64,000 nt of DNA from Octopus sinensis (taxonomy: Eukaryota): assembly GCF_006345805.1 (NCBI RefSeq), contig NC_043010.1:6014001-6078000 (forward strand). Direction: 5' to 3'. The position numbers were made by a program, and so were the translations under genes. The notes below the pieces were generated by a model that worked only from the letters and a program-made list of their open reading frames with translations, had not been told where the DNA came from and ran no database searches. Every line of letters starts with the position of its first letter. The first letter of the stretch is position 1. Below are positions 248 through 58,900 of this stretch, piece after piece.

Positions 248-3200
248 TTAGACGTCTGTTGCAGACAGGGGAGGAAGTGGAGGTACCTGGGGTGATGAAG
301 GTACCTTCGGTAGTGTTGTTATTTTGGGTACAGCTGGCAGAGATGGTTTACAGTCTGAAGTAAACTGACTTTTCACTGGTACTGTAGAATGTTGTCCAGT
401 TATGTTAGATGTGATCCCAGTAATAGTCAAAGGTGTTTGGTCAATCGAACAGGAAGTGTTATTATCGACATTAGGTTGATGGTGATATCCATATTTGTTA
501 TCTCCCCTTGATCTGTTGAGTGTGTTTTGAAGTTGATTTCTCCTATTCCATGTCTGGTCACTTTGGTAACGGCACAGATCTAAAAAATAATGAGTTTGTA
601 TATGAATTTACTTTGCAATCAACAATTAACCTCATTAACATTTCTTTCGGGCATAAAATTATTCTCCATCTGTGCAGGTTTGCTTGCAAATTTTTAATTT
701 CTAAGAAACAACTTGATAATTTATTGATAACGAAGAAGATAATTAAATTCAGATAATTAACATTCTCATTTTTAATTAGGGATTAGTCTTGAAAACGAAT
801 TTTCCAAGAAAAATACATGTAAAGAAATTTTAATAGAACATTTTATACAATCAATATCTTAACCCCTATTTCTGAAAGTGTTACAAATGGACAATAATCA
901 TTAATTTGAAATTAAATCATAGTCCTTTTTATTTGGAGACTGGTGGAATGAAAGCTCCCTTGTTTGAAAAGCATTCAATGGATTAGTTACAGAAAGAGCC
1001 TCTAGGTGTAAAGCACTGCCTTAATATTCTACTCATCTGACTGATGCTAGCATAAGAAAAATGAACGTAAAAGGAATGAACAAACTAAATTAAATATATG
1101 TATTACGCTCTCATTAGGAAATATATTAAATTTAAAAGTTTCTTACAACTGAAGAAATGCTTGGTAATTTTATCTTACCTGGCAGTTCCTCATAATGTCC
1201 AGCACTACCGACACTCCAGCCTTGACCACTATCAGTGTGAGATGACAATGTTGACATCTCACTGAATTGGTCAGGATTGTTCAGTTCTCTGTAACCTGGA
1301 GACATACTTTCCTCTCTGGGAATAAAAATCTATAAATATAAACCCAATGGATCATCAAGATGTTCTGAACGTTCAAAAAAAGAAATATATCTCAAAGATT
1401 TAGACAATTCTAAGGAATTTTAATCATTGTATACTCTAAGTTCTAAACTTTCTGAAGTCTACAAGTAATTTCCTAGAAAGATGACCTCAAAACATCAGTC
1501 AGAATATATATAGGTAATTTTTAGTATATTGTATTTACTCTGTCTCCAGGATATCTTCATCATCGCCATCTCAGAGTGCTATGACTTTTGAGTTTATAAT
1601 ATTCAAAGAAGCTTCAATTAGTAAGAAATAATCATATATTAATTTAGTTGCTCCAGTAAGCTAAGGATATGAACAATAACAAGCAGAGGTAATAATTCAA
1701 TTTGAAAACAGCAGTCGAGTTTCAAACTAACTTTTCAAATTGTATCTGACAGTTTATTAGTATTACCCTAGTAACATAGGAAAACTATTCTACAGGTGAA
1801 AATAGCAGACCTGTTTTATTCATGTCTAATGATGACTGCAATTGTACAGATAAGATTAGCAATTGTCTAAAATACTGTGTATATAACATTCCTCCAACCA
1901 TAAAGATTGCACGTGTCAATAAATATTTGTTACTTCTCAATTTCCTTTGCAGCATTCACATGAAGTTTTTCTAGGAATACCCAAAATTGAAAAGAATGCA
2001 AAAATACATTTGGAAAAGATTGATGAACAATAAAGGGAATGATTTAAATGTAAAATAGTGAGAGTGGTCATCATCATCATTGAACATCAGTTCTCCATGC
2101 TGACATGGGATGGAGAGTAGGACAGGAGTTAGCTAGCTTGAGAGCTGTCCATGCTTCATCTCCCTATTTTTCTATAGTTTCTATGAAGGGATGCATTTCC
2201 TAACACCAACCACTTAACATGGTGGGTGCTTTTATATGGCCCCAACATGGGAACTGTTACGTAAAACCTCTATAGGCAATTTTACATGAAGCATGCAACA
2301 GCTATTTTTTCCTTGATATTTCAAATAAATATAAGCAATTTACCTGTTCAGGTCTGTTCAAAGTAAAATCGTTCCACTTATCACATGGCATGGTTCTGCA
2401 GTAAGTATCTTCCCTATAAACCTTTGATTCTTGAGATGGCTTCAGTTTTCTCGACATCGTGTACGAAATGCCAGGTGGAACACAGGTAGGATCAAATATA
2501 TATTTTGATTGTACGTTTAATGCAGGTGTAACCTTGTGGTACATATCAACACTGTTGTTATAGTTGCTGTCTGTCTGCTTCAGTCTATGAACTATACAGA
2601 TTGATATAGAGATCACTATGACAACTGATACGATCACAGCTGCTATAACAATAACAATCATCACATTCAATTGGAGACCATTACTTGATTCTGTTGTTGT
2701 CTTTGAAGGGGTCTTAAATATCTTTGATGTGGTGTTACTAACTGTGAGAGTCAAAGACAAAGTTGTTGTCGATGACAGAACTGGACTGCCACTGTCTTTC
2801 ACACCTAATTCCAGTTCATAGAATCCAGCATCATTTTGGTAAAGTGAGCGAGAGAAAGATAAGACACCAGAGTGATGGTTCATTTGAAATAAGTGTTTCT
2901 CATTACCTCTGAGTATTTCATATGTGAGGAAGGCATTGTGTTGGCTGTCTCTGTCAGAGGCCCTAACAACTGTGATATCCTGGTCAGAGTGGGGATGGTA
3001 GTGGACATTAAGAGTGAAAGGGTCAACATTAGGGAAACTGAAATAGGGAGCATTATCATTTAAATCCATAACCTCAACAACAACATTTGCTCTCTTCTCC
3101 AGTGATGGTGTTCCTTTATCTTTTACTAAAACCTTAAACTCATACAGGTTCTTTTCTTCTCTGTCTAGGGACTCAGTTGTGGAAATGAATCCCACATCAG

Positions 3201-4731
3201 ATATCTGAAATGGTAGAATATCTTTTCCATTAGATAATAGAGAATAGGTTAATTGTCCTCCATCTCCAATATCTGGGTCTGTGGCATTGACATAGCCAAC
3301 AGGGAAGTCTTTGTGTTCATTTTCATAGGTGAGAAACTTAAATATGTCCTGACTAAACTGAGGTTGTACATCATTTATGTCAGTGACCAGCACAGAAAAC
3401 TGTTTCTCTACTTTCAATGGAGGTAAACCATTATCTTGACATTTAATGGTGAAATTAAAGCTCTTCTCACTCTCTCTATCTATTTCACTCTTGACAACAA
3501 CTTTGTAATTCTTTTCAGACTCTGCGATAAGCTGAAGATATCTATTTTGTAAATGACACTTCACTTGTCCATTTTTTCCACTGTCATTGTCAATAGCATT
3601 GACAAAAGCAACAAAACTGTGAATTAAAGTTCCTTCTGAGATGACTGCTGTGTTTCCAGTCGACTTGAAGACAAATTTGACATCAATTTTGGGAGGATTG
3701 TTAAGATGACTGATTCCAGTTACAAGAACAGTTGCAGTTGAGGACATTGGTGGGTTACCATTATCCCTTGCTTCAACAAACAATTTATATATCCTTCCAA
3801 ATTGAAATTCTTTCTTCAGAAACAAATATCCAGTTACTTCATCTAATCTGAAAAACTGTTCAGTATATTTTGATGTTATGGCATTGAAAAAATAAGATAT
3901 TAATCCATTTTCTCCTTCATCTAAATCCGTAGCCAACAGCTTTGCAATCGGTTTGTTTAACTGGTGTGTGTCATTTACAGTGACATTATAAGTATTTTGA
4001 GAGAACACAGGGAAATTATCATTAATATCTTTAATAATTATTTTTATATGAAGTACACCTTCTTTCTGTGGTGACCCATTATCTCTGGCAATAAGCTGAA
4101 TATCGTAAATGCTTTTTGTCTCACGATCTAAGACATTTTCAAGGTTTAGTTGCAATAAATCAGATCCATCCAATTTTTTAGAAACAATCAATTTAAAAGG
4201 AGTATTTAAATTTTCAATCTCATATGTAATTTTGGAATTCTGAATACTGACATCATTATCAATGGCATTTGGAATTATATGCCTGGTTCCTATTAGAACG
4301 CTTTCATCAAATTTTAAATGAAATTCCTTTTTTGGAAACTTTGGAGAATTATCATTAACATCTTCTATTATAACTTTGAGTTTTAATATCTTAATAACAG
4401 AATAGCCATGTTGAACAGTTATTTCCAATATTCTGAAACATTCCACATTATATTGACACAGAATTTCTGCATCCAATATGGCAGCAGTGTACAAGTGTCC
4501 TCCCTGTGTAACATTAAATAACTGGTCTGTTTCATCAGAACTTCTCTGAAGTACATTAAACATCAGTTTGCTGTTATCGTCAAGAGATGGTACAGTATCC
4601 AATAAGTGTGTATCAGTGACAATATCTCCAATAAAGCTGTGTATATCATTGTTCTCTTTCACATGGTAGGTATGATCCACACACCAACAATTGTTAACCA
4701 TTAACAACACCAACCAAAGTATGTATAACAT
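248..4731 (-). CDS. Pcdh: Protocadherin gene 1 (6 EC + TM + cytoplasmic tail), about 956 aa; coding exons 4731-2344, 1329-1179, 579-248
   Basis: Signal peptide, EC1 C-X5-C motif (LCQYNVEC), DxNDN/DRE/DxD cadherin motifs and a hydrophobic TM helix. Donor CAG|GTAAAT at 2344/2343; 151-nt exon TAG|ATT...CCAG|GTAAGA; acceptor TTTAG|ATCTG at 579. Phases 0 and 1 keep the frame open to the stop at 248. Symbol is family-level only. Confidence 0.93.
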
Positions 4732-8025: not shown

Positions 8026-11000
8026 TTAGACGTCTGTTGCAGACAGAGGAGGGAGTGGAGGTACCTGGGGTGATGAAGGTACCTTTGGTAGTGTTGTTAT
8101 TTTGGGTACAGCTGGCAGAGATGGTTTACAGTCTGAAGTAAACTGACTTTTCACTGGTACTGTAGAATGTTGTCCAGTTATGTTAGATGTGGTCCCAGTA
8201 ATAGTCAAAGGTGTTTGGTCAATCGAACAGGAAGTGTTATTATCGACATTAGGGTGATGGTGATATCCATATTTGTTATCTCCCCTTGATCTGTTGAGTG
8301 TGTTTTGAAGTTGATTTCTTCTATTCCATGTCTGGTCACTTTGGTAACGACACAGATCTAGAAAAAATATTAAGATTTTATATAAATTTATTTGCAATAA
8401 AAAAATTAAGCATTTGTTTCATGCATAAAATTATCCCAAATCTATGCAGGTTTACTCAAAACTTTGAATTTTTAATGAACAACTTGATAATTTATTGATA
8501 ATGAAGAATTTAATTAAATTCAGATGTTTTTCATTTTAACATTCTCATTTTTAATTAGGGATTAGTCTTCAGAAGGAGTTTTGGAAGAATAATATATGTG
8601 AATAAATTTCACGAGAACATTATATATATTGAATAGCTTGACCTATATCTTTTTAAAGATTTGCAAATGGACACTAATCATTAATTTATAATTAAATTTT
8701 AGTCGTGTATCTATGGAGATTGGTGGAATGAAAGCTTCCTAACTTGAAAATTAATGAATGGGTGAACAACAGAAAGAGCCACGAGGTGTAAAGCATTGCC
8801 TTAATATTTTACTCATCTGATTCATGCTAACATACGCAAAATGAATGTAAAACGAATGAACAAACTAGATATGTATTATTATATCATTAGGAAATATAAT
8901 ATTAAATTTAAAAGTTTCTTACATCTGAAGAAATTCTTGGTATTTTTATCTTACCTGGCAGTTCCTCATAATGTCCAGCACTACCAACACTCCAGCCATG
9001 ACCACTATCAGTGTGAGATGACAATGTTGACATCTCACTGAATTGGTCAGGATTGTTCAGTTCTCTGTAACCTGGAGACATACTTTCCTCTCTGGGAATA
9101 AAAATCTATAAATATAAACCCAATGGATCATCAAGATGTTCTGAACGTTCAAAAAAAGAAATATATCTCAAAGATTTAGACAATTCTAAGGAACCTTCAG
9201 TTGGGATGTTCATTTCTAATCATTGTATACTTTAAATTCTAAACTTTCTGAAGTCTTCAAGTAATTTCCTAGAAAGATGACCTCAAAACATCAGTCAGAA
9301 TATATATATAGGTAATCTTTAGTATATTTATTTACTCTGTCTCCAGGATATCTTAATCATCGCCATCTCAGAGTGCTATGACTTTTGAGTTTATAATATT
9401 CAAAGAAGCTTCAATTAGAAAGAAATAATCATATATTAATTTAGTTGCTCCAGTAAGCTAAGGATATGAACAATAACAAGCAGAGGTAATAATTCAATAT
9501 GAAATCAGCAGTCGAGTTTCAAACTAACTTTTCAAATTGTATCTGACAGTTTATTAGTATTACCCTAGTAACATAGGAAAACTATTCTACAGGTGAAAAT
9601 AGCAGACCTGTTTTATTCATGTCTAATGATGACTGCAATTGTACAGATAAGATTAGCAAGTGTCTAAAATACTGTGTATATAACATTCCTCCAACCATAA
9701 AGATTGTACATGTCAATAAATATTTGTTACTTCTTAATTCCCTATGCAGCATTCAGAAGATATTCTTCTAGGAATACCCAAAATTGAAAATAATGCAAAA
9801 ATACATTTGGAAAAGATTGATGAACAATAAAGGGAATGATTTAAAGGTAAAATAGTGAGAGTGGTCATCATCATCTTTTAACATCAGTTCTCCATGCTGA
9901 CATGGGATGGAGAGTAGGACAGGAGTTAGCTAGCCTTAGAGCTGTTCATGCTTCATCTCCCTATTTTTCTATAGTTTCTATGAAGAGACGACCATCGTAA
10001 CACCAACCACTTAACATGGTGGGTGCTTTTATACGGCCCCAACATGGGAACTGTTACGTAAAACCTCTATAGGCAATTTTACATGAAGCATGCAACAGCC
10101 ATTTTTTCCTTGATATTTCAAATAAATATAAGCAATTTACCTGTTCATGTCTGTTCAAAGTAAAATCGTTCCACTTATCACATGGCAAGGTTCTGCAGTA
10201 AGTATCTTCCCTATAAACCTTTGAGTCTTGAGATGGCTTCAGTTTTCTCGACATTGTGTACTGAACTCCAGGAGGAACACAGGTAGGATCAAATATATAT
10301 TTCGATTGCGTGTTTAATGCAGGTGTAACCTTGTGGTACATATCAACACTGTTGTTATAGTTGTTGTCTGTCTGATTCAGTCTATGAACTATACAGATCG
10401 ATATAGAGATCACTATGACAACTGATACGATCACAGCTGCTATAACAATAACAATCATCACATTCAATTGGAGACCATTACTTGATTCTGTTGTTGTCTT
10501 TGAAGGGGTCTTAAATATCTTTGATGTGTTCTTACTAACTGTGAGAGTCAAAGACAAAGTTGTTGTCGATGACAGAACTGGACTGCCACTGTCTTTCACA
10601 CCTAATTCCAGTTCATAGAATCCAGCATCATTTTGGTAAAGTGAGCGAGAGAAAGATAAGACACCAGAGTGATGGTTCATTTGAAATAAGTGTTTCTCAT
10701 TACCTCTGAGTATTTCATATGTGAGGAAGGCATTGTGTTGACTGTCTCTGTCAGAGGCCCTAACAACTGTGATATCATGGTCAGAGTGGGGATGGTAGTG
10801 GACATTAAGACTGAAAGGGTCAACATTAGGGAAACTGAAATAGGGAGCATTATCATTTAAATCCATAACCTCAACAACAACATTTGCTCTCTTCTCCAGT
10901 GATGGTGTTCCTTTATCTTTTACTAAAACCTTAAACTCATACAAGTTCTTTTCTTCTCTGTCTAGGGACTCAGTTGTGGAAATGAATCCCACATCAGATA

Positions 11001-12528
11001 TCTGAAATGGTAGAATATCTTTTCCATTAGATAATAGAGAATAGGTTAATTGTCCTCCATCTCCAATATCTGGGTCTGTGGCATTGACATATCCAACAGG
11101 GAAGTCTTTGTGTTCATTTTCATAGGTGAGAAACTTAAATATGTCCTGACTAAACTGAGGTTGTACATCATTTATGTCAGTAACCAGCATTGAAAACTGT
11201 TTCTCTACTTTCAATGGAGGTAAACCCTTATCTTGACATTTAATGGTGAAATTAAAGCTCTTTTCTCTTTCTCTGTCTATTTTACTCTTGACAACAACTT
11301 TGTATTTCTTTTCAGACTCTGAGATTAGCTGAAGATATCTATTTTGTAAATGACACTTCACTTGTCCATTTTCTCCATTGTCATTGTCAATAACATTGAC
11401 ATAAGCAACAAAACTCTGAATTTGTGTTCCTTCAGAGATGACAGCTTTTTTTCCAGTTGACTTAACAAAAAATTTGAAGTCAATGTTTGGTGGATTATTC
11501 AAATGAGTGACACCATTTATAAGGACAATGGCTGTTGAAAACATAGGTATTTTACCATTATCTCTAGCTTCAACAAGCAATTTATATATCCTTCCAAATT
11601 GAAATTCTTTCTTTAGAAACAAATATCCAGTTACTTCATCTAATCTGAAACACTTCATGGCATATGTTGATGTTTTGCTATTGAAGACGTAAGATATTAA
11701 TCCATTTTCTCCTTCATCTAAATCTGTAGCCAACAGCTTTGCAATAGGTTTGTTTAACTGGTGTGTGTCATTTACAGTGACATTATAAGTATTTTGGGAG
11801 AACACAGGGAAATTATCATTAATATCTTTAATAATTATTTTTATATGAAGTACACCTTTTTTCTGTGGTGATCCATTATCTCTGGCATTTAGCTGAATTT
11901 CATAAATGCTTTTTGTCTCACGATCTAAGATATTTTCTAGATTGAGTTGCAATAAATCAGATCCATCCAATTTTTTAGAAACAATCAATTTAAAAGGAGT
12001 ATTTAAATTTTCAATCTCATATGTGATTCTGGAATTCTGAATACTGACATCATTATCAATGGCATTTGGAATTATTTGCTTGGTTCCTATTAGATCATTT
12101 TCATCAAATTTTAAATGAAATTCCTTTTTTGGAAATTTGGGGGAATTATCATTAACATCTTCTATTATAACTTTGAGTTTTAATATCTTAATAACAGAAT
12201 AGCCATGTTGAACAGTTATTTCCAATATTCTGAAACATTCCACATTATATTGACACAGAATTTCTGCATCCAATATGGCAGCAGTGTACAGTTGTCCTCC
12301 CTGTGTAACATTAAATAACTGAGCTGTTTCATCACTACTTCCCTGAACAACATTAAACATCAGTTTGCTGTTATCGTCAAGAGATGGTACAGTATCCAAT
12401 AAGTGTGTATCAGTGACAATATCTCCAATAAAGCTGTGTATATCATTGTTCTCTTTCACATGGTAGGTATGATCCACACACCAACAATTGTTAACCATTA
12501 ACAACACCAACCAAAGTATGTATAACAT
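8026..12528 (-). CDS. Pcdh: Protocadherin gene 2, about 956 aa; coding exons 12528-10141, 9105-8955, 8357-8026
   Basis: Close paralog of gene 1 with the same exon sizes (2388/151/332 nt), canonical GT-AG sites and an open frame. Confidence 0.93.
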
Positions 12529-16530: not shown

Positions 16531-19500
16531 TTAGATGTCTGTTGCAGATAGAGGAGGGAGTGGAGGTACCTGGGGTGATGAAGGTACCTTTGGTAGTGTT
16601 GTTATTTTGGGTACAGCTGGCAGAGATGGTTTACAGTCTGAAGTAAACTGACTTTTCACTGGTACTGTAGAATGTTGTCCAGTTATGTTAGATGTGGTCC
16701 CAGAAATAGTCAAAGGTGTTTGGTCAATCGAACAGGAAGTGTTATTATCGACATTAGGGTGATGGTGATATCCATATTTGTTATCTCCCCTTGATCTGTT
16801 GAGTGTGTTTTGAAGTTGATTTCTTCTATTCCATGTTTGGTCACTTTGGTAACGACACAGATCTAAAAAATAATGAGTTTGTAGATGAATTTACTTTGCA
16901 ATCAACAATTAACCTCATTAATATTTCATTCATGCATAAAATTATTCTCCCTCTGTGTAGGTTTGTTCAAAAGTTTGTATTTCTTATCAACAGTTTGATA
17001 ATTTATTGATAATGAAGAATTTAATTAGATTCAGATGTTACTAATATTTACATTGTATTTCTTGATTATGGTCAGTTCTGAGAAGGAAGTTTGGAAGAAA
17101 AACTGACATGAATAAATTTTAGTAGAACTTCTTAGAGAACCAACATCTTAACATGAATATTTTATAGTGTGAGAAAAGAACAATAATCAATAATTTGAAA
17201 TTATATTGTAGTCTTGTACTTTTTGGGATTGGTGGAATGAAAGCTCCCTTGTTTAAAAAGCAATGAAAGCTTATCAACAGAAAGATCTCTTGGAATAAAG
17301 CATTGCCTTAATATACTGCTCATGTTAGCATTAGAAAAATGAACATAAAATGACTTATGTTAGCAAAAGAATAATGAACATAAAATTAACAAATTAAATT
17401 AAGTTAAATATATGTATTACACTCTCATTAGGAAATATAATATTTAATTTAAAAGTTTCTTACATCTGTAGATATGCTATTTCTAACTTACCTGGCAGTT
17501 CCTCATAATGCCCGGCACTACCAACACTCCAGCCATGACCACTATCAGTTTGAGATGACAATGTTGACATCTCGTTAAATTGGTCAACACTGTTTAGTTC
17601 TCTGTAACCAGGAGACATACTTTCTTCTCTTGGAACAAATATCTGAAAATATAAATCCAATAGACCATCATAATGTTATTAAAATAGAATCCATAAATTT
17701 AAAAGCAATTTTTAAAAAACCTTCAGTTAGGACATTATTTTATATCTTAACTTTGCAACAGATTACTTGTACCAAATCTAGAAATTAGACACAAATCAGC
17801 AATCAGAATATTGAAGCAATTCATAGGGTATTTTACATTCTTTGTCTACAAGATATCTTCAACGTCACCATCTCTTAACAAAGATAACTGTGACTCAAGT
17901 TTGTAATATCTGAACAAGCTTACAATAGTTTGTTAGAATCGTACATTAAATAATTTAGTTAGCATAGTAAACTGAGGATATCAATAATATTGAACAGAGT
18001 AAGTAATTGAATACCAAAACAGCATTCAAATTTTTAAGTATCTTTTAAAATTGTATGTGAGTGATCACTAATAGAAGTTATTATCCAAGCAATATAGGAA
18101 TGCCTTTCTGCAGATGTTCAGTGACGGAAGACGCTAGTGAAGATGCCAACACTTTAATGACTGGAACAAGTCATTAATCCATTGGCTGGGAAATTTCCCT
18201 GGTGCAGTAACTAACAACAACACATGTGTGTCTGTGTGTGAACAGCTTCATATCCATGGTTTTATTCAAATGCATAACAAACGAATTCATACTGTGAGTA
18301 CACAATGCTCAATAAAGTTATTTGGGATTGAAGTAAAAGATTCTGAACATCTTGCCATGTTCCATGATGAGAGTGAGAAAATAGGAGGAACTCAATCTAC
18401 AAAAATTACTTTCAGACAGGCACTAGGCATAGAATACCATAGCAAGTTGCTGGTAGAAAAAACTATTGAATCCATGTGCCTGGCTCTCTCTCCAATGTTT
18501 GATCTAGTAAAGTCTTAGAGAAAAAAAAGAGAAATTCAATTGGAATTTGCTCTTAAGTTGGCGATATTGCTTCTAACACCTTCCTGCATGTGGTTTAGCA
18601 GTTATACCTCGTATGCTAGCAAAGAGGGAATTAACCAATGTTTGCTTGGAATGTTCTAGAACATTCGACAAGAAAGACAGCTGTAGTTGATTCCCAACGA
18701 ATATTTTGCAGGCTACGAACCTGTTTCAAATAGCGTTGCCTACAGATGAAAATAGCAAACATGTTTTATTCACATCTATAGTTTACTGTAATTGGGTATA
18801 TATGAGAACTCTAGTACAGCTAAGAAAATTATCAATTATTTAATATACTGTGAATATAATATTCCTCTGACATTAAAGATAATTTGTGGGAGTCGAAAAA
18901 TTTGTATCTTCTCAATTTCCTTTGCAGTATTCATATGGTGCTTCTCTTCAAAGAACTAACTGTAAAATGTATGAAAATATATAGCAGACACAGCTACGTT
19001 AGAGAGAACAAATTAAATGCTTAATAGAGTGAGTTGTATACAAGGAGAACAATTTCAAAATATTTACTTAAGATGATTGCTCTGAAATAAACATAAAACA
19101 GTTTTATTTCATGCAGGAACACATGGTCAGAATAAACATTTCCAAATAATCTAAGTAACTCACCTGTTGAGGTCTTTTTAAAGTCAGATCATTCCATCTA
19201 TCAGCTGACATATTTCTGCAGTAAATACCTTCCCTGTCTTCAATTGGTTGTTGAGATGACTTCAGATTCCTCTCCATTGTGCACTGAACCCCAGGAGGAA
19301 CACAAGTAGGATCAAATATATATTTCGATTGGATGTTTAATGCAGGTGTAACCTTGTGGTACATATCAACACTGTTGTTATAGTTGTTGTCTGTCTGCTT
19401 CAGTCTATGAACTATACAGATCGATATAGAGATCACTATGACAACTGATACGATCACAGCTGCTATAACAATAACAATCATCACATTCAATTGGAGACCA

Positions 19501-21554
19501 TTACTTGATTCTGTTGTTGTCTTTGAAGGGGTCTTAAATATCTTTGATGTGGTGTTACTAACTGTTAGAGTCAAAGACAAAGTTGTTGTCGATGACAGAA
19601 CTGGACTGCCACTGTCTTTCACACCTAATTCCAGTTCATAGAATCCAGCATCATTTTGGTAAAGTGAGCGAGAGAAAGATAAGACACCAGAGTGATGGTT
19701 CATTTGAAATAAGTGTTTCTCATTACCTCTGAGTATTTCATATGTGAGGAAGGCATTGTGTTGACTGTCTCTGTCAGAGGCCCTAACAACTGTGATATCA
19801 TGGTCAGAGTGGGGATGGTAGTGGACATTAAGAGTGAAAGGGTCAACATTAGGGAAACTGAAATAGGGAGCATTATCATTTAAATCCATAACCTCAACAA
19901 CAACATTTGCTCTCTTCTCCAGTGATGGTGTTCCTTTATCTTTTACTAAAACCTTAAACTCATACAAGTTCTTTTCTTCTCTGTCTAGGGACTCAGTTGT
20001 GGAAATGAATCCCACATCAGATATCTGAAATGGTAGAATATCTTTTCCATTAGATAATAGAGAATAGGTTAATTGTCCTCCATCTCCAATATCTGGGTCT
20101 GTGGCATTGACATATCCAACAGGGAAGTCTTTGTGTTCATTTTCATAGGTGAGAAACTTAAATATGTCCTGACTAAACTGAGGTTGTACATCATTTATGT
20201 CAGTAACCAGCATAGAAAACTGTTTCTCTACTTTCAATGGAGGTAAACCATTATCTTGACATTTAATGGTGAAATTAAATCTCTTCTCACTCTCTCTATC
20301 TATTTCACTCTTGACAACAACTTTGTATGTCTTTCCAGACATTGAAATAAGCTGAAGATATCTATTTTGTAAATGGCACTTCACTTGTCCATTTACTCCA
20401 TTGTCATTGTCAATAACTTTGACAAAAGCAACAAAACTGCCAATTTTAGATGCTTCTGAGATGACAGCTGTGTTTCCAGTTGACTTAATGACAAATTTGA
20501 AGTCAATGTTTGGTGGATTGTTAAGATGACTGACACCATTTACCAGAACAGTAGCTCTTGAAATTCTGCGAGGAATACCATTATCTTTGGCTTCAATAAA
20601 TAATTTATATAATTTTCCAAACTTATATTCTTTTGTCATAAATAATTCTCCAGTTACTTTATCTAATCTGAACAGAGTTTTAATCTTTTCTGGTGTTTTA
20701 GAACTGATTATGTATGAAATTCTCCCATTCTCTCCCTCATCCATGTCTGTAGCAGAAAAATTTAATATAGGTTTGTTTATTTGGTATGTATCATTTACAT
20801 TTATATTGTAGGTACTCTGAGAGAATACAGGTGAGTTATCATTTTTATCTTTCACTAAGATATTTATATCCATTACACCTTCCTTTGGTGGTGTTCCACC
20901 ATCTGTAGCAACTAGTTGGATATGATAATTAGATTTTGTCTCTCGGTCTAGATTCTTTTCCAGAACTAGCTCAAGTAAATTAGTTTCACTTAAATCTTGT
21001 GATAAGACCAATTTAAAAGGAATATCTTCATCCTCTTTCAATTTATAATTGATCTTTGTGTTCTGAATACTGACATCTTTGTCAATGGCATTTGGAAGTG
21101 TTTCTTTTCTTCCTTTTGCTGCACTTTCATCAAACTGTATATTAAATTCTTTGTTTGGGAAAATGGGAGAATTATCATTGGCATCTTCTATCATAACTTT
21201 GATTTCCAATATTTTGAGAAAAGAATGGCCATGCTGAACTGCGATTTCCAATACCCTGAAGCATACCACATTATATTGACAAAGAATTTCTGCATCCAAT
21301 ATGGCAGCTGTGTGCAGTTGTCCTCCAGGTGTAACATTAAACAACTGAACACTTCCATCTGTATTACCCTGAAGTACTTTAAATTTCAGTTTGTTGCTAT
21401 TATCCTGAGACTGTATATTATCCAGTAAGTGTGTATCAGTGACAATATCTCCAATATAACTGTTTAAATCATTGTTCTCTTTCACATGATAAATATGATC
21501 CACACACCAGGAGCTCTCAGCCATCAACAGCACCAACAATACCATTGACAACAT
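16531..21554 (-). CDS. Pcdh: Protocadherin gene 3, about 957 aa; coding exons 21554-19164, 17642-17492, 16862-16531
   Basis: Acceptor TTTCAG|ATT at 21588 places the likely start at ATG 21554 (MLSMVLLVLL signal peptide), not 21656. Donor CAG|GTGAGT at 19164; 151-nt exon; terminal exon nearly identical to those of genes 1 and 2. Confidence 0.92.
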
Positions 21555-25826: not shown

Positions 25827-28199
25827 TCAAGGTACTTTTGGTAGTGTTGTCACCTTAGGTACAGATGGTAGAGGTGGTATACAGATTGCCATTGCTACTG
25901 AAGGTGGTTGTTCAATTATGTTAGATGTGGTACCTGTTATAGTCAAAGGTATTTGGTCAGGGCAACAGGAAGTGTTCATGTCAACATTAGGTTCAGAGTT
26001 ACATCCATTGTTATCTCCCCTTGATCTGTTCAGTGTGTGTGGTAATTGGTTTCTCGTATTCCATGTGCAATCACCTTGGTAGCGACACAGATCTGTAGAA
26101 ATAGGGATTGAAGATTGACATCTCACTCAGAATTTTAACAAAAGTGTCAGTAAGTTCTGTAGTCACTTTGGTTACAACAAATATATATGGAAACATTTAT
26201 TTTGAGTGATTTAAGATATCTTTGGTACAAAATTTATTGAAAGAAATTCCTAAATTAAATTCATTTTTTTACAGTATTCTTTTATTTGATGATATATATA
26301 TGTTTAAGTTCCATGATTAAAAAATATCAATATAATATCTAACCAGTGTAAAATAGAAGCATGTTTGAGAAGTTTGCTTCGTATCCATTTATTTCCTACT
26401 CATAGAAATTGTTCAGCTAAATTTGATGATCTTTTATGTCATCTTTTTTTCAAGGAGCAGTTTGATGCATTGGGGAACAGCCGATGGCATTAGAGAGCAT
26501 TGAAGGCGGCGAGCAGGCAGAAACATTAGCGCGCCATGCAAAATGCTTAACGGTATTTCGTCTGTCGTTACGTTGTGAAGCTGCTGGAGACTTTGGTCAA
26601 GCTTTGGCTGGTGTTGCTGCTTGGAGGCCACATATGTGTGAAAGCAGGACTCAGTACCTTGCCATATCTCCAGGAAGAATCAGAAGTGGTTGTAGAAGAA
26701 ATTCTGTGATTTCATCAGCTCCGATTTCTGTCTCCCACCCAATTACACATATTGTAATCTTATTGGCACTATGAGTGGGGCAAGGCCAAAAATGGTATCA
26801 ACTACTTTTCTTGCAACACCAAGGCCAATCTGGTGACCAAGATCAAGGAGGTGTTTCAAGATCTACTCGGTGACACAGTGAAGAACACATTTGCCAGGTT
26901 CTTGAGTTGTCTTGAAGCCATGGTGGAAGCCGAGGAAATAGTTGGCATTGCAACGAGTATCCAACCATAGAAACCAAGCCAAAAAGGAAACTCATGAGCG
27001 AACACACCAAACTGACTGAGGTAACCTCTCCAACCCATGCCAGCATGGAAAGTGGATGTAAAAAACCATGATGGTGAGGATTTACATAAATTATGATCTG
27101 AAACTGCAGAAATATTAGGCATATTTAACTGACCTGATAGATCTTCATAGTGTCCAGCATTGCTGACACTCCATCCATGACCACAGTCCGTGGTAGATGA
27201 CAATGTTGACATCCCACTGAAGGGGTTAGTGCTGTTTAGTTCTTTATAATTTGGTGACATACTTTCTTCTCTTGGAACAAATATCTATAAAAAAACAAAA
27301 AAAACAAATGAGAAATAGAAAAATATTCTGAAGAATTGCAATAAATAAATAGAAATAGGCAATTCAAGGAATAAACCAAAGCCTATAACTTCCACATTAA
27401 GTTCCCTTAAAGAATAATTAGATTTTGCCACAACAGCAAAGGTTGAAATATTAATTAACGGGTTAGTAAGTATGTCATAGAATTCAAAGAATAAAAATGA
27501 AGTTATTCAATATTAAAAGAATTTTGAAAGAATATAGCTATTTATGCTTTTATTGATTCTAAATGTCTGATGCAATATTTGAAATAAAATATATCAAAGA
27601 ATTTTACTTTTTACAAGCTCTGGTAAATTTTTAGTCTTTATGAAATAATTTCAATGTAGAATAAACATTTTGTTCACCCCATCTCAAATTTTGAAAAAAA
27701 AACCAGGCAAATAGGACAGTTGAATTAGAAAAACAACTCTGAATAGATTATTAAAAATCCCACCTGTTGATGATTTCTTAGGCTCAGATCTACCCATTGG
27801 TCAGATACACTTCTGCAGTGAATATCTTCTCTGTCTACCATTGGTTGTTAAGATTTCTGAAGATTTTTTTTTCCACTGTGTACTGAACACCAGGAGGAAC
27901 ACAAGTAGGATCAAATATATATTTTGATTGCGTGTTTAATGCAGGTGTAACCTTGTGGTACATATCAACACTGTTGTTATAGTTGTTGTCCGTCTGCTTC
28001 AGTCTATGAACTATACAGATCGATATAGAGATCACTATAACAACTGATACAATCACAGCTGCTATAACAATAACAATCATCACATTCAATTGGAGACCAT
28101 TACTTGATTCTGTTGTTGTCTTTGAAGGGGTCTTAAATATCTTTGATGTGTTCTTACTAACTGTTAGAGTCAAAGACTAAATTATTGTTGATGACAGAA
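25827..28199 (-). pseudogene. 5'-truncated protocadherin remnant: end of EC6 + TM + juxtamembrane region (28199-27764), intact 151-nt exon (27284-27134), intact terminal exon (26092-25827)
   Basis: Homology to paralogs stops abruptly at ~28199. No EC1-EC5, start codon or promoter cassette lies between it and gene 4. In the exon-1 remnant, an extra A in an A9 run (~27864-27872) shifts the frame, and the paralogous frame has CAA>TAA. Both downstream exons are open and have AG/GT sites. Confidence 0.88.
26580..26945 (+). mobile_element. Tc1/mariner transposase C-terminal remnant
   Basis: QKWL*KKFCDF... followed by a degenerate WPPxSPDxNP region, then NTKANLVTKIKEVFQDL...FARFLSCLEAMVEA, matching the typical mariner C-terminal helix pattern. 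Confidence 0.55.
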
Positions 28200-33100: not shown

Positions 33101-35408
33101 GAGATTTCTTCACATTTCTCTCCAATGTGTACTGAACTCCAGGAGGAACACAAGCAGGATAAAACATATATCTTGATTGCATATTTAATGCTGGTATAAC
33201 ACCATGGTACATATCAACACTACTATTATAGTTTCTATTTGTCTGCTTCAACCTATGAACTATACAGATTGATATAGAGATCACTATGACAACTGATACG
33301 ATCACAGCTGCTACAACAATAACAATCATCACATTCAATTGGAGACCATTACTTGATTCTGTTGTTGTCTTTGAAGGGGTCTTAAATATCTTTGATGTGT
33401 TCTTACTAACTGTGAGAGTCAAAGACAAAGTTGTTGTCGATGACAGAACTGGACTGCCACTGTCTTTCACACCTAATTCCAGTTCATAGAATCCAGCATC
33501 ATTTTGGTAAAGTGAGCGAGAGAAAGATAAGACACCAGAGTGATGGTTCATTTGAAATAAGTGTTTCTCATTACCTCTGAGTATTTCATATGTGAGGAAG
33601 GCATTGTGTTGGCTGTCTCTGTCAGAGGCCCTAACAACTGTGATATCCTGGTCAGAGTGGGGATGGTAGTGGACATTAAGACTGAAAGGGTCAACATTAG
33701 GGAAACTGAAATAGGGAGCATTATCATTTAAATCCATAACCTCAACAACAACATTTGCTCTCTTCTCCAGTGATGGTGTTCCTTTATCTTTTACTAAAAC
33801 CTTAAACTCATACAGGTTCTTTTCTTCTCTGTCTAGGGACTCAGTTGTGGAAATGAATCCCACATCAGATATCTGAAATGGTAGAATATCTTTTCCATTA
33901 GATAATAGAGAATAGGTTAATTGTCCTCCATCTCCAATATCTGGGTCTGTGGCATTGACATATCCAACAGGGAAGTCTTTGTGTTCATTTTCATAGGTGA
34001 GAAACTTAAATATGTCCTGACTAAACTGAGGTTGTACATCATTTATGTCAGTGACCAGCATAGAAAACTGTTTCTCTACTTTCAATGGAGGTAAACCATT
34101 ATCTTGACATTTAATGGTGAAATTAAAGCTCTTCTCACTCTCTCTATCTATTTCACTCTTGACAATAATTTTGTATTTCTTTTCAGACTCTGAGATTAGC
34201 TGAAGATATCTATTTTGTAAATGACATTTCACTTGTCCATTTTCTCCACTGTCATTGTCGGTAACTTTGACATAAGCAACAAAACTTTGATTTTGAGTTC
34301 CTTCTGAGATGACAGCTGTGTTTCCAGTTGACTTTATAACAAATTTAACATCAATTTTGGGAGGATTGTTAAGATGACTGACACCATTTATAAAAACTGT
34401 GACTGTTGATGACATAGGTGGTTTACCATTATCTCTGGCATCAATAAATATCTCGTAAATCTCACCAAAATTAAATTCTTTCTTCAAAAATAGCTCCCCT
34501 GTTGCCTCCTCTAATTTAAAGCTTTCTTTTATCCTTTTAGGTGTTTTAACATTATTAAAGACATAAGAAATTCTTCCATTTTCCCCTTTATCTAAGTCTG
34601 ATGCAGAGACCTTAACAAGAGGCTTGCTTCTCTGGTATGTATCATTTATAGTGACATTGTAAATATTCTGGGAGAAAACAGGAAAATTATCATTTTTATC
34701 TCCCACTAATATTTTTATATCCAATACACCTTCCTTTGGTGGTGTTCCTTGATCTTTGGCAATTAACTGAATATTGTACATATCTTTTGTCTCACGGTCT
34801 AAGGAACCTTCTAAAATTAGTTGCAATAAATCAGTTCCACGTGACTTAGAAACAACCAATTGAAAAGGAACATTTTCATTTTCCTTCAGTTGATAATTGA
34901 GTTTAGAATTCCGAGAGCTAATATCGTTATCAATCGCATTTGGAATGATTTCTTTGATTCCTTTGGTCACACTTTCATCAAATGACACTTGAAATTCCTT
35001 ATTTGGAAATATAGGAGAATTATCATTGACATCTTCTATTATAACTTTGACTTCTAATATCTTGATAACAGAATGGCCATGTTGAACTGCTACTTCCAAA
35101 ATCCTGAAGCATTCCACATTGTATTGGCACAATGTTTCTGCATCCAATATGGCAGCTGTGTACAGTTGTCCTCCAGGTGTAACATTAAACAACTGAACAC
35201 TTCCATCAGTACTACCCTGGAGTATTTTAAATGTCAGTTTGCTTCTATCATCTTGAGTCTGTATATCATCCAGTAAGTGCATATCAGTGACAATATCTCC
35301 AATATAATTGTTTATATCATTGTTCTCTTTCATGCGGTAGATATGATACGCACACCAGCAGCTTTCAGTCATTAACAACACCAACAGTATCACTGATAAC
35401 ATCTTCAT
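30139..35408 (-). CDS. Pcdh: Protocadherin gene 4, about 960 aa; coding exons 35408-33012, 32502-32352, 30473-30139
   Basis: Acceptor TTTCAG|ATT at 35427. The ORF-track start at 35426 is TTG; the first ATG is at 35408 (MKMLSVILLVLL). Donors CAG|GTGAGA and CAG|GTTAGT; acceptor TTCCAG|GT at 30473; frame open. Confidence 0.92.
31660..32323 (+). mobile_element. CR1/L2-clade LINE 3' fragment with (ATT)n tail
   Basis: Translates RPHLEFASPVWNPYLAQDINHLEAIQ...YSERL...FRKHFFTLRVAEAWNKL, with stops, and ends in attattatt. Confidence 0.8.
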
Positions 35409-48037: not shown

Positions 48038-51000
48038 TTAATGTTCATTGTCTCCAGTATATATCTACAAAATTACTATCTCTTGACACAGACTACTATA
48101 ACTGTTGAATTGGCAATGATTAAAAAAACTTAGATAAAGAAGAAAATAAGACTCATATCAAATAATTTAGCTTGCCAAGTTCAATGAGGATATGAATAAC
48201 ACTGTGTAACAAAATTTTAAATTTTTTCTGTCTTTGGTCATTAATTATTATATCCTAATTGCTTCTATCTAGAAATCAAATGAAATGACTATTCCCTTCA
48301 AACTTTGCTTTTGACATCAATGTTTTCAAACGCACTGATTTTCCATTACATTTCAGACACATTCTTCACTGAGTGGCTGAAACAGAAATATCTTTACAGC
48401 AAATGTTCTGCTCAATACCACAGGTTTGCTTCTCAGTTGTTTGGCCTTGACCGCTTGAGCATATCTCTTAGTGGCATATCTCGTATTCAATATATATTTG
48501 TAGGTTCTGAATTTCTATTGCAGCTCTTACATGGTGTGATTTAATAGTAATACAAGTGAATATCGGTAAAGATTGTAGTCAGAGAAATGGTGGATGATGT
48601 CTAAGAAGATATACTACTATAGGGGATCACTTGATTGAGTGGTGACTTACTGAAATCGAAGAGGTTGATCTATTTATAACATCATTTACTACAGCTTCAA
48701 AATTTTTAGTAATCTTTAAACGCTACATAGAGATTACTGTCTTTGGTTGGAACAAAACTAAGATCTGCAAAAGCAACTGTGTTTAAGGAAGATTATCTAG
48801 AAACCATTTCTGCAATTGAATCTCAGATTTTGAGGTTCAAACTTCATCAAGGTAAAAGTATATGTTACTTTGAATATATCTTTACATTTTAAAGGCAAAA
48901 TTCTGTTTTTAATCTGTACAGAAGAAGCTGCATTTGAAATGATTAAAAATTAATATGCAAAATGACAAACATTTCATCTTACCTGATTGTTTTCTCTTGA
49001 AGCCTGATCATTCCATCTATAAGACATAGTTCTGCAGTGAATATTGTCTCTGTCTACCATTGGTTGTTGAAATTTTTCACATTTCTCTCCATTGTGTACT
49101 GAACTCCAGGAGGAACACAGGTAGGGTCAAATGTATACTTTGGTTGGATGTTTAATGTAGGTGTAACCTTGTGGTACATATCAACACTGTTGTTATAGTT
49201 GCTGTCTGTCTGCTTCAGTCTATGAACTATACAGATTGATATAGAGATCACTATAACAACTGATACGATCACAGCTGCTATAACAATAACAATCATCACA
49301 TTCAATTGGAGACCATTACTTGATTCTGTTGTTGTCTTTGAAGGGGCCTTAAATATCTTTGATGTGGTGTTACTAACTGTTAGAGTCAAAGACAAAGTTG
49401 TTGTCGATGACAGAACTGGACTGCCACTGTCTTTCACACCTAATTCCAGTTCATAGAATCCAGCATCATTTTGGTAAGTGAGCGAGAGAAAGATAAGACA
49501 CCAGAGTGATGGTTCATTTGAAATAAGTGTTTCTCATTACCTCTGAGTATTTCATATGTGAGGAAGGCATTGTGTTGGCTGTCTCTGTCAGAGGCCCTAA
49601 CAACTGTGATATCCTGGTCAGAGTGGGGATGGTAGTGGACATTAAGACTGAAAGGGTCAACATTAGGGAAACTGAAATAGGGAGCATTATCATTTAAATC
49701 CATAACCTCAACAACAACATTTGCTCTCTTCTCCAGTGATGGTGTTCCTTTATCTTTTACTAAAACCTTAAACTCATACACGTTCTTTTCTTCTCTGTCT
49801 AGGGACTCAGTTGTGGAAATGAATCCCACATCAGATATCTGAAATGGTAGAATATCTTTTCCATTAGATAATAGAGAATAGGTTAATTGTCCTCCGTCTC
49901 CAATATCTGGGTCTGTGGCATTGACATATCCAACAGGGAAGTCTTTGTGTTCATTTTCATAGGTGAGAAACTTAAATATGTCCTGACTAAACTGAGGTTG
50001 TACATCATTTATGTCAGTAACCAACACAGAAAACTGTTTCTCTACTTTCAATGGAGGTAAACCATTATCTTGACATTTAATGGTGAAATTAAAGCTCTTC
50101 TCACTCTCTCTATCTATTTCACTCTTGACAACAACTTTGTATTTCTCTGCAGATACTAAGATTAGCTGAAGGTATCTGTTTTGTAAATGACACTTCACTT
50201 GTCCATTTACTCCACTGTCATTGTCAGTAACTTTGACATAAGCAACAAAACTGCCAATTTTAGATGCTTCTGAGATTACTGTTTTGTTTCCTGCTGACTT
50301 TAAGATAAATTTTACATGGATTTTTGGTGGATTATTAAGGTAACTGATCCCTTTAATAAGGATGGTGGCTGTTGAAGACATAGGTATTTTTCCATTATCT
50401 GTGGCTTCAACTAACAATTTATGGATTTTTCCAAATTCAAATTCTTTCTTCACAAATAATTCTCCAGATGTCTGATTTAAAATAAAGAATTTCTTATCTT
50501 TATCTAAGGTGTCAGGACTGAATGTATATAGAATTTGTCCATTCGTACCCTGATCTACATCTGTAGCAGTTAAATTCAAAATAGGTTTATGCAAATTCTG
50601 TGTATCTTTTACTGTGACATTATAAATACTTTGGGAGAATACAGGTGCATTGTCATTCTTATCTCTTACTAAAATATGGATGGCCATATCTGCTTGTTTT
50701 GGAGGAGATCCCCCATCTGTAGCCATTAGAAGAAGATCATAATTTTTCTTCATTTCTCTGTCTAGTTTTCCATTCAGAATTAATTCTATTTTACTTTTCC
50801 GGTCAGAAATTTTTATTACCATTAATTGGAAAGTTTTATTAATATTATTCCTCAGTTCATAAGAAAGCTTTGAGTTCTGAATACTGACATCTTTGTCAAT
50901 GGCATTTAGAATTATTTCTTTTGTTCCTTTCAAATCATTTTCATCAAACTGTATATTAAAGTCTTTGTTGGGAAAAATGGGATAATTATCATTAACATCT

Positions 51001-55997: not shown

Positions 55998-58900
55998 TTA
56001 GTTGTTTAGTGTTGTCACAGGAGGTACTGGAGGTACCCTTGGCAATGTTTTTACCTTTGGTACAGCTGATAGAGGTACTTTACTACTTGAAGTAAAGTCG
56101 TTTGTCCTTGCTACCGTAGATGGATGTTTAGCTATATTCGATGTGGTCCCAATTATAGTCAAGGGTATTTGATTATAGGAAGAGTCCATATCGGCGTCTG
56201 GTTGAAAGGGATAGCCATTGTTATCTCCCTTTGATCTGTTCAGTGTGTGTGGAAGTCGATTTCTCCTAATCCATGTGAGATCACTTTGGTAACGGCACAG
56301 ATCTAAAAACAGTTACATTTAAAGATTATAATGCAATTTGAGTATTGTACCAAAAAATGAAGGATAAATTCTAAGAGTACATTCTTTATCTTGACATAAG
56401 AACTAAAGGGCGTTTGTGTGTGTATGCACGTATACATTGAGATGTACATAACTAAATATTTTTCTGCCTTACAACTGATATCACAGAAAGGAAAATGTGC
56501 TTTAGACAAAAAGCTTTGATTTAAAAAGAACTTCAAAAATGTTATCATTAAAATAAAGCAACAGTCACGGAAATGGAAACAAGAATTTATCACTTACCTG
56601 GTAGTTCTTCATAATGTCCAGCACTACCGACACTCCATCCATGACCACTATCATTATGAGATGATAATGTTGACATTTCACTAAATTGGTCAGCACTGTT
56701 TAGTTCTCTATAACCTGGATACATGCTCTCTTCTCTTGGAACAAATACCTAAATTTTGAGATGCCATAATGAATAGGAAATTTGGAAGAAGACAACAAAA
56801 ATTTATTAAAAACACAACTCATGGAAAAACAGGAACCAGCTGATATAAAGTTCCTTAAAGTAACTTTAGTCAAATTTCACTTAATCAATCATTATTCAAC
56901 CTGTCATTATATGCTTTCTGTTAAGGCAGTGAGCTGGCAGAATCATTGGCACATCGGACAAAATACTTAGTGTCCTTTTATCTGTCTTTATATTCTGAGT
57001 TCAAATTCTGCCTTTCATCCTTTCAGGGTCGATAAATTAAGTACCAGTCACGCACTGGAGTCAATGTAATTGACTTAATCCCTTTGTCTGTCCATGTTTG
57101 TCCCCTCTATGTTTAGCCCCTTGTGGGCAATAAAGAAATAAGAAACTTTGGAAGCCTGTCATATGTGTGCGTACCTTTGTCTCTTACTGCAACTTGTATC
57201 GGTTTATTTACATCCCCCAGCAAAAAATTACCTGACTTAAAATTAGTACTAGGGTTGATTACATCTTTCAAGGCTGTACCTCAGCAGTATGGAGTATCCG
57301 GAACTATTATTATTATTATTTCATTTTTCATGAGCGCATAACAGATTAGACTGTTGGAAAAAAATTCCTAACATTGGTCTACAACAAGTAACGTCAGATG
57401 CCACAAACCTTCCTAAGGATCCTAGCTATCCTCAGTAATACTGTTTTCTGAAGTTGTACTAAAGTAGGTTTTATGTGTTCCATTCTTTTGGAGTCGATAA
57501 AATAATTGTTGAACACTGAGATCGCTGTAGACATCTTATCCTCTGACCCAAAATTACTAATTTTCAGCCAAAATTTGTAATCATTATTGAAGGATATATT
57601 TTTTATTTTGATTCTGCATAAAATAGAAATCATCACAATAATATAAAATGTTTTGTTTATAAAGAATGAGTTTAAGTTACCAAAGAAATCATTCAACAAT
57701 AAATATCCTGTGGTACAAAAGTGACATTTTTGTTGTTATATAATTACCATTATAGGAGTGGCTGTATGGTAAGTAGCTTACTTACCAACCACATGGTTCT
57801 GGGTTCAGTCCCACTGCGTGGGACCTTGGGTAAGTGTCTTCTACTATAGCCTTGGGCCGACCATAGCCTTGTGAGTGGATTTGGTAGACGGAAACTGAAA
57901 GAAGTCCGTTGTATGTATGTATATATATATGTGTGTGTGTTTGTGTGTCTGTGTTAGTCCCCCCAACATCGCTTGACAACCGATGCTGGTGTGTTTACAT
58001 CCCCGTAACTTAGCGGTTCGGCAAAAATAGACCAATAGAATAAGTACCAGGCTTACAAAGAATAAGTCCTGGAGGTCGATTTCCTCGACTAAAGGCGGTG
58101 CTCCAGCATGACCGCAGTCAAATGACTGAAACAAGTAAAAGAGTTAAGAGTATTATCTTCCATTCAGATTGTTGTTAATCGAAATATTGAGAACATTTAA
58201 TAAAATATAGTACACACACACACATGGGATTTCTTTCATGCAGTTTCTATTGGCCAAATTCACTCACAATGCATTGGTCAAACTAGGCTTCAGTAATTAA
58301 TACACATATTTCAACATTATTAAATAGCTGACAAATATTTTACCTGTTGATGTGTTTCAATGAAAGCTGGTTTACCCCATCCATCACTGCAGTGAACACC
58401 TTCCATATCCATCATGGGTTGTTGAGATTTGCTCATGTTTCTCTCCAATGTGTACTGAATACCAGGAGGAACAAATATATATTTCGATTGGGTGTTTAAT
58501 GCAGGTGTAACCTTGTGGTACATATCAACACTGTTGTTATAGTTGTTGTCTGTCTGCTTCAGTCTATGAACTATACAGATCGATATAGAGATCACTATGA
58601 CAACTGATATGATCACAGCTGCTATAACAATAACAATCATCACATTCAATTGGAGACCATTACTTGATTCTGTTGTTGTCTTTGAAGAGGTCTTAAATAT
58701 CTTTGATGTGGTGTTACTCACTGTTAGAGTCAAAGACAAAGTTGTTGTCGATGACAGAACTGGACTGCCACTGTCTTTCACACCTAATTCCAGTTCATAG
58801 AATCCAGCATCATTTTGGTAAAGTGAGCGAGAGAAAGATAAGACACCAGAGTGATGGTTCATTTGAAATAAGTGTTTCTCATTACCTCTGAGTATTTCAT

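Follow-up and report, generated by a model that had tools for sequence, protein, structure and literature searches.

We analysed a stretch of 64,000 nucleotides of the Octopus sinensis genome (NCBI RefSeq assembly GCF_006345805.1, contig NC_043010.1, positions 6,014,001 to 6,078,000 of the forward strand), which in its full length is called the window below. It carries six large protocadherin open reading frames (ORFs), all on the minus strand and in the same orientation, as a tandem array. Each ORF encodes a signal peptide, six extracellular cadherin (EC) repeats, a transmembrane (TM) helix and the first part of a cytoplasmic tail, with the ectodomain and the TM helix in one large exon. Inside this exon, a block comprising the part from mid-EC4 through EC5, EC6 and the TM helix to about 10 cytoplasmic codons is 98–100% identical among the window paralogues, while EC2-EC3 of the same genes are variable. 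The genes and their blocks have the following window positions:

2344..4731, minus strand: exon 1 of gene 1, encoding the signal peptide, EC1-EC6, the TM helix and the proximal cytoplasmic part
2343-2342, minus strand: GT donor of gene 1, beyond which the ORF continues to a stop at 2302 (ORF 2302-4731)
3694..4347, minus strand: variable EC2-EC3 cassette of gene 1
2560..3438, minus strand: homogenised core block of gene 1 (late EC4, EC5, EC6, linker, TM helix, about 10 cytoplasmic codons)
3439-3690 and 2450-2559, minus strand: shoulders of the gene 1 block, in which identity decays
10054-12528, minus strand: ORF of gene 2, homogenised block at 10357..11235
19104-21656, minus strand: ORF of gene 3, homogenised block at 19380..20258
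32919-35426, minus strand: ORF of gene 4, homogenised block at 33228..34106
49440-51419, minus strand: ORF of gene 5, cut short, homogenised block at 49195..50072
58320-60719, minus strand: ORF of gene 6, homogenised block at 58539..59417

The reading frame of gene 1 is open from the ATG to a CAG/GT donor at 2344/2343, and the hydrophobic TM stretch after EC6 reads VMIVIVIAAVIVSVVIVISISICIV. Pfam assigned Cadherin in five stretches of the genes, Cadherin_2 at the N-terminus and one CELSR2-like cadherin domain. EC5-EC6 are in register with EC5-EC6 of the solved structures of Pcdh10, Pcdh-gammaB4, -gammaB7 and -gammaA4, and the alignment of the window genes shows linker motifs for Ca2+ binding (DxNDN and similar), as in six-EC protocadherins. 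The nearest database proteins are 'protocadherin beta-like' models of Octopus vulgaris, O. sinensis, O. bimaculoides and Argonauta hians. With regard to the domains compared, gene 2 corresponds to O. sinensis protein P0008, being identical to it in EC1-EC3, EC5-EC6 and the last tail exon.

The extent of the block was determined by averaging nucleotide identity over all pairs of the six genes in windows of 100 nt, given in gene 1 coordinates. From 0.68–0.76 in EC2-EC3, identity rises to 0.93 (3572-3473) and 0.96 (3472-3373), reaches 0.99–1.00 (3372-2773) and then declines to 0.97 (2772-2573) and 0.89 (2572-2473); flanking non-coding DNA remains at about 0.45, which is the level of a forced alignment. 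The original prediction, made from the sequence of the window, had described 2500-3570 as near-identical in all six genes; this holds for a core of about 2560-3440, and the remainder consists of shoulders of falling identity. Its count of about 4 mismatches over 660 nt between genes 1 and 6 was exact, as 2761-3420 and 58740-59399 differ at 3014, 3262, 3295 and 3385. Identity falls off gradually over about 250 nt on each side, and the block ends within exon 1, about 70 codons short of the splice donor. In the block, 28 of 876 positions are polymorphic, compared with 562 of 1353 in the remainder of exon 1 (Fisher p = 2e-108).

Synonymous divergence (dS) was calculated for each domain of the six window genes by the Nei-Gojobori method (NG86). 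It amounts to 0.36 in EC1, about 0.9 in EC2, 1.09 in EC3, 0.32 in the first and 0.14 in the second part of EC4, 0.019 in EC5, 0.023 in EC6, 0.043 in the linker and TM helix and 0.30 in the proximal cytoplasmic part, so that dS in the block is about 50-fold below that of EC2-EC3 in the same exons. A sliding window of 30 codons, the check proposed together with the original prediction, placed the core bounds at about 3420-2580 with shoulders on both sides and separated the block (dS about 0.02) clearly from the sequence elsewhere (EC2-EC3 about 1). The GC content at third codon positions (GC3) is modestly higher in the block (0.29–0.39) than in EC2-EC3 (0.22–0.25). EC2-EC3 of gene 1 differ from those of genes 3-6 at 25–36% of nucleotides (dS about 1) and from those of gene 2 at 9%. 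That EC2-EC3 and introns are clearly diverged was thus correctly recognised beforehand, with EC2-EC3 dS near 1 and introns that cannot be aligned. Diverged tails are found between genes 1 and 6 as described, but the last exon is 98–100% identical among genes 1, 2 and 3. A strong conservation of the second half of EC1 is present in the protein (non-synonymous divergence, dN, 0.05–0.08), but the nucleotides are not near-identical (dS 0.30–0.51).

For comparison with other octopods, we used orthologous loci of O. bimaculoides (L001, three genes) and O. vulgaris (L002-L005, ten genes in about 190 kb of OX597827.1) and two loci of A. hians (L006 and L007 on BAAFZT010000037.1, four tandem genes). 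The O. vulgaris assembly is independent of that of O. sinensis, and its 10 paralogues differ by 0.6–2.7% in the block and by 18–36% in EC2-EC3. This species has at least 10 equally oriented genes in about 190 kb, and the family undergoing conversion extends beyond the six genes of the window. EC2-EC3 of gene 3 differ from the orthologue by 5.5% in O. vulgaris and by 7.5% in O. bimaculoides; the corresponding values for gene 4 are 1.1% and 9.3%, and gene 6 is 0.0% from its O. vulgaris copy. Orthologue divergence at the locus is hence very uneven, ranging from 0 to 9% in EC2-EC3. The orthologue dN/dS in EC2-EC3 is 0.18–0.60; these pairwise averages give no sign of diversifying selection.

Trees of the individual domains are in conflict with each other. 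In the neighbour-joining tree of EC2-EC3, the copies of gene 3 from O. sinensis, O. vulgaris and O. bimaculoides (Osi_g3, Ovu_g3o, Obi_g3o) and those of gene 4 (Osi_g4, Ovu_g4o, Obi_g4o) each form a group with 100% bootstrap. In the tree of EC5-EC6-TM, all 16 O. sinensis and O. vulgaris copies stand on one side of a bipartition with 100% bootstrap, and orthology is erased. Per-domain trees had been suggested as a check of concerted evolution, and the two topologies contradict each other at full bootstrap support. Within the block, paralogues of one genome are closer than orthologues between genomes, both for sinensis/vulgaris against bimaculoides and against Argonauta, whereas EC2-EC3 keep the orthology. 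Gene order is retained between the compared species as well. O. bimaculoides separated from vulgaris/sinensis about 34 million years ago (Mya) and vulgaris from sinensis about 2.5 Mya (PMC10700109). Since the EC2-EC3 orthologue groups span the older of these splits, the paralogues must be older than 34 million years (My), while the block coalesces much later.

The four Argonauta genes have an EC2-EC3 dS of 0.5–2.1 and dN of 0.2–0.4, against 0–3 differences per domain in the second part of EC4, EC5, EC6, the TM helix and the proximal tail (in EC5 and EC6, 0–3 differences per 315 nt). EC1, with 4–12 differences per 333 nt, and the whole of EC4 are also homogenised, so that the variable part is exactly EC2-EC3. 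The Argonauta block differs from that of Octopus by about 12% (dS 0.22–0.29, dN 0.09–0.10), and copies within each genome are 99–100% alike. A block which changes between lineages and yet is uniform within a genome indicates concerted evolution and not purifying selection on the sequence alone. At the protein level the same identity profile was found for this subfamily in Octopus and Argonauta and for two further Argonauta subfamilies, i.e. a variable stretch that begins as EC1 ends and extends through EC3, and 97–100% identity from EC4/EC5 past the TM helix. Two more protein pairs, one within O. vulgaris and one between O. vulgaris and O. sinensis, combine a high core with low EC2-EC3 identity.

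Downstream of the block, every gene has its own pair of tail exons, and a 5′-truncated relic with a further pair is located in the array:

1329-1168 and 580-251, minus strand: private pair of tail exons of gene 1
9105-8944 and 8358-8029, minus strand: private pair of tail exons of gene 2
17642-17493 and 16863-16534, minus strand: private pair of tail exons of gene 3
32502-32353 and 30486-30193, minus strand: private pair of tail exons of gene 4
47607-47458 and 46809-46546, minus strand: private pair of tail exons of gene 5
56748-56599 and 56303-56052, minus strand: private pair of tail exons of gene 6
27753..28199, minus strand: 5′-truncated protocadherin relic with the end of EC6, the linker, the TM helix and the proximal cytoplasmic part as far as a GT donor
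27275-27138 and 26093-25809, minus strand: tail exons of the relic

As all six genes and the relic possess two tail exons of their own, there are no shared constant exons of the vertebrate alpha/gamma type, in agreement with PMC9068888. The relic lies between genes 3 and 4 and begins abruptly in the last codons of EC6; it has a counterpart in O. vulgaris (L002 3360-3806). Judged by eye from the printed alignment, its linker/TM stretch is about 96% like the functional copies. That this relic, which is presumably non-functional, still carries block sequence was counted in favour of conversion.

From these data we consider it very probable that domain-restricted concerted evolution by interlocus gene conversion keeps about 0.9 kb of exon 1 near-identical among old paralogues. 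The original prediction had already proposed concerted evolution, which is now borne out by the drop in dS, by the incongruent trees and by paralogues that resemble each other more within a genome than orthologues do between genomes. It is well supported that the identity of the block is due neither to recent duplication nor to plain protein constraint. According to the proposed mechanism, repeated non-reciprocal copying between loci would homogenise the segment from mid-EC4 to about 10 codons past the membrane. Conversion tracts would begin in the highly similar block and end where divergence rises, and divergence itself may hinder heteroduplex formation. Selection could in addition purge conversions that wipe out differences in EC2-EC3, which would carry isoform-specific trans recognition. 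Uniformity of EC5-EC6-TM might be tolerated or even favoured if this part has a function that all isoforms share; judging from vertebrates, this could be cis-association, surface delivery or processing. Unequal crossing-over contributed locally, namely to the duplication of genes 1 and 2, the 3′ flank of gene 3 and the relic starting inside the block.

Mosaic patterns were found both in the block and in its neighbourhood. A four-gamete test in the block gave 27 incompatible pairs among 55 pairs of informative sites, a pattern that polishing cross-talk could also yield. The gene 6 orthologues of O. sinensis and O. vulgaris differ at 2 positions in the first about 1380 nt and at 13 positions within the 873 nt of the block (p = 2e-4), and for 11 of these 13 both states occur among other paralogues, which polishing cross-talk could likewise mimic. 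EC4 contains scattered patches that are specific to a lineage and agree with other paralogues. Between O. sinensis and O. vulgaris, EC4 of gene 4 diverges by 8%, against 1.1% in EC2-EC3 of this gene; the first part of EC4 differs by 17.5% between genes 1 and 2 despite their 92.8% identical duplication, and the second part in gene 2 is nearest to gene 6. For the orthologues of genes 3 and 4 in the two species, EC4 (3367-3693 in gene 1 and equivalents) differs by 8–10%. A run-length permutation on polymorphic sites in the style of GENECONV was powerless for the block, because all copies are homogenised and few polymorphic sites are left; its hits were limited to the 3′ shoulder (about 2620-2514), where it found tracts specific to gene pairs, and to the relationship of genes 1 and 2. 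The density of polymorphic sites and the domain trees were therefore used in its place.

Several points weigh against this interpretation. Conversion is deduced from the pattern in the sequences, and no event was directly observed. In O. bimaculoides, for which the assembly is Illumina-based, the block copies of the three paralogues are 5.5–6.7% apart, compared with about 30% in EC2-EC3, and they are paraphyletic instead of forming a species clade. Fixed differences between O. bimaculoides and sinensis plus vulgaris amount to 2 in the core and none elsewhere, which is a weak signal. The orthologue dS between sinensis/vulgaris and bimaculoides is about 2–3 times lower in the block (0.06–0.12) than in EC2-EC3 (0.14–0.20), and unbiased conversion alone does not predict such a drop. 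The higher GC3 of the block is compatible with GC-biased conversion opposing AT-ward mutation, which, speculatively, might be a cause of the low orthologue dS. The assemblies of O. sinensis and O. vulgaris are both based on long reads, in O. vulgaris Oxford Nanopore reads polished with Illumina reads (PMC10700109), so that mis-mapping between paralogues could inflate identity, and mis-mapped polishing reads could create part of the four-gamete and gene 6 orthologue signals. As to function, a cis-dimerising EC5-EC6 stalk, specificity in EC2-EC3 and a combinatorial code are putative in the octopus, proposed on a reasonable analogy.

Among the alternatives to gene conversion, unequal crossing-over within the block as the main homogeniser survives best, although we regard it as unlikely. 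Genes 1 and 2 speak for it, as they arose by tandem segmental duplication of 7.8 kb and have 92.8% identity over 5.1 kb (1-5128 versus 7780-12909). The 3′ flank of gene 3 shares 85% identity with its gene 2 counterpart (6178-9595 versus 14683-18116), although EC2-EC3 of the two genes agree at only 70%, which points to an older duplication or an unequal crossover with its breakpoint inside exon 1. The near-identical last tail exons of genes 1-3 and the relic beginning inside the block fit this process too. However, a crossover would make everything 3′ of its breakpoint uniform, and genes 4, 5 and 6 are diverged everywhere downstream of the block, i.e. in the coding sequence of the proximal cytoplasmic part, in intron 1 and in the tail exons (57–63% amino-acid identity). 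In a self-BLAST, the homology of genes 4-6 was restricted to exon 1. Since these three genes are diverged on both flanks, their block is internally bounded, and genes 1-3 have common 3′ flanks in addition; most gene pairs show internally bounded block identity. The conserved order and orthology of EC2-EC3 between the compared species also speak against crossing-over as the main process.

We judged it very improbable that near-identity arose from assembly collapse or from consensus polishing with reads mis-mapped between paralogues. Residual base errors are hinted at by gene 5, which differs from its intact O. vulgaris orthologue by two 1-bp homopolymer deletions and one in-frame 3-bp indel:

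about 49478, minus strand: 1-bp deletion in gene 5 (TTT to TT), inside the homogenised block
about 49078, minus strand: 1-bp deletion in gene 5 (A6 to A5), near the exon end
about 50279, minus strand: in-frame 3-bp indel in gene 5

Gene 5 could be either a young pseudogene or a case of indel errors of the long-read assembly. The wider spread of the O. bimaculoides block copies would also fit an artefact, as would the older gene models P0015 and P0017 of this species, which are gapped exactly in the block. These models lack EC6 or EC5-EC6, probably due to short-read assembly gaps or collapses caused by the repeat. On the other hand, the same domain pattern was obtained in assemblies of four species from different groups and with different technologies, and in O. 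bimaculoides, too, the block is still at about 6% versus about 30% in EC2-EC3. The gradual decay of identity at both edges, a window without N and copies that lie in unique flanks are further arguments for real copies. Copy-specific variants (KN and VVAAV of gene 4) are common to orthologues in two independent assemblies, and Osi_g4 pairs with Ovu_g4o at 0.9%. Moreover, mis-mapping presupposes that the copies are already highly similar. The coarse pattern thus holds in the assemblies of all four species, and the exact degree of identity is less certain.

Cephalopod RNA editing constrains synonymous sites. Purifying selection at the nucleotide level, exerted by an RNA structure for adenosine-to-inosine editing, an exonic regulatory element or an antisense transcript, would explain the lowered orthologue dS of the block, but we find this extremely improbable as the source of its identity. 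Such constraint cannot erase orthology in the block tree, and it does not accommodate Argonauta and Octopus blocks that are about 12% apart with nearly identical copies in each genome. An RNA-structure constraint was tried and rejected, as the fold of the block had z = +0.76 relative to shuffled sequences and a control segment from EC2-EC4 z = -1.70. There were no Rfam matches in the whole window, no tandem repeats in the gene 1 region and no long antisense ORF in the block.

Young duplicates whose EC2-EC3 diverged very fast or came as cassettes from distant paralogues are hardly credible, for although genes 1 and 2 are a truly recent duplication and a protocadherin burst was dated to 8–14 million years ago (Ma) from whole-gene distances (PMC9795677), the synonymous sites of EC2-EC3 are old too, introns and intergenic DNA of genes 3-6 cannot be aligned, the non-coding flanks of genes 4-6 are as diverged as EC2-EC3, the block is bounded on the 3′ side as well, and EC2-EC3 have one-to-one orthologues in O. 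bimaculoides beyond the split of about 34 My (PMC10700109).

The octopus block thus represents a new, independently evolved instance of a known process, regional protocadherin gene conversion. A 2004 report by Noonan et al., cited here via Yu et al. 2007, is said to have described such conversion in teleosts. For the Pcdh2-alpha and Pcdh2-gamma subclusters of fugu and Pcdh2 of zebrafish, regional gene conversion was described by Yu et al. 2007 (PMC1852091), and the octopus block is a near-exact counterpart, almost point for point. In both cases tandem paralogues share more than 99% nucleotide identity, synonymous sites included, in the 3′ part of a large ectodomain exon, with a boundary to the divergent 5′ part in EC4 or EC5. 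Homogenisation is subcluster- and lineage-specific, and trees need the N-terminal domains. GC3 is raised in the converted part of the teleost genes (PMC1852091); the octopus shift is in the same direction and small (from 0.24 to about 0.33). There are also differences. The octopod arrays go back to an expansion of their own, separate from that of vertebrates (PMC9068888), and their genes are complete with private tail exons, whereas teleosts splice variable exons to shared constant exons. The independent expansion assumed in the original prediction is consistent with both of these points. Furthermore, the octopus block stops in the exon soon after the TM helix and the fugu block runs to residue 777, and in Argonauta EC1 is homogenised too, so that only EC2-EC3 vary.

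A similar domain pattern exists in clustered protocadherins of mammals and Xenopus, where dS is highest in EC2/EC3 and lowest in EC5/EC6 (Etlioglu et al. 2016, PMC4978886). In mouse alpha isoforms, EC1 (96%) and EC5 (98%) are more conserved than EC2-EC4, with EC2 at 69% and EC3 at 59% (PMC4978886). The vertebrate-like arrangement originally proposed, with variable EC2-EC3 and homogenised EC4/5-EC6, was therefore appropriate with respect to both fugu and mouse/Xenopus. Conversion in mouse and Xenopus is described as low-level, in contrast to the octopod block, which is as extreme as that of teleosts. In vertebrates, trans specificity of EC2-EC3 and cis association of EC5-EC6 are experimentally established; the corresponding roles in the octopus would follow by analogy from the sequence pattern. 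Arthropod Dscam1 is alike in function only, as variable recognition modules on a constant scaffold serve neuronal identity; its diversity comes from alternative splicing of immunoglobulin (Ig) exons in one gene of unrelated fold, and not from a converting gene array.

On cephalopod protocadherins, the available text suggests in general terms that similar sequences could stem from recent duplication or from gene conversion (Styfhals et al. 2019, PMC6339937, citing Albertin et al. 2015; Albertin et al. 2022, PMC9068888), and no domain-resolved analysis, boundary, dS profile or cross-species test was found in the searchable part of this literature. The literature search likewise yielded no biochemical results on octopus protocadherins. 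The burst of 8–14 Ma was dated without consideration of conversion (PMC9795677). Single brain cells of O. vulgaris express about 19–21 protocadherin genes each (PMC9712504), a number that is compatible with a combinatorial code and does not show one.

As a tentative extension, for which we see somewhat less than even chances, octopods may have independently evolved a quasi-constant region. In each subfamily, EC4/5-EC6, the TM helix and the juxtamembrane part would be kept uniform by continual conversion across at least 10 complete genes, in Argonauta together with EC1, leaving EC2-EC3 as the sole isoform cassette. The stalk might then be a shared module for cis-association and surface delivery that defines subfamily-wide compatibility groups and, through another genetic mechanism, replaces the conserved EC6 and the spliced constant exons of vertebrates.

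For practical work, the 0.9-kb block will cause problems in short-read assembly and polishing, in RNA-seq and single-cell quantification and in probe design for these genes. The mosaic structure of the genes distorts trees built from whole genes as well as distance-based dates for the cephalopod protocadherin expansion, e.g. for the proposed recent burst, and EC2-EC3 are a better basis for trees and dating, as has been done for fish. With regard to the biology of the family, variable EC2-EC3 on a homogenised membrane-proximal stalk have arisen twice, in the clustered protocadherins of vertebrates and in the independent octopod expansion. This convergence makes a vertebrate-like working of octopus protocadherins testable by domain swaps and shows which domains to swap.

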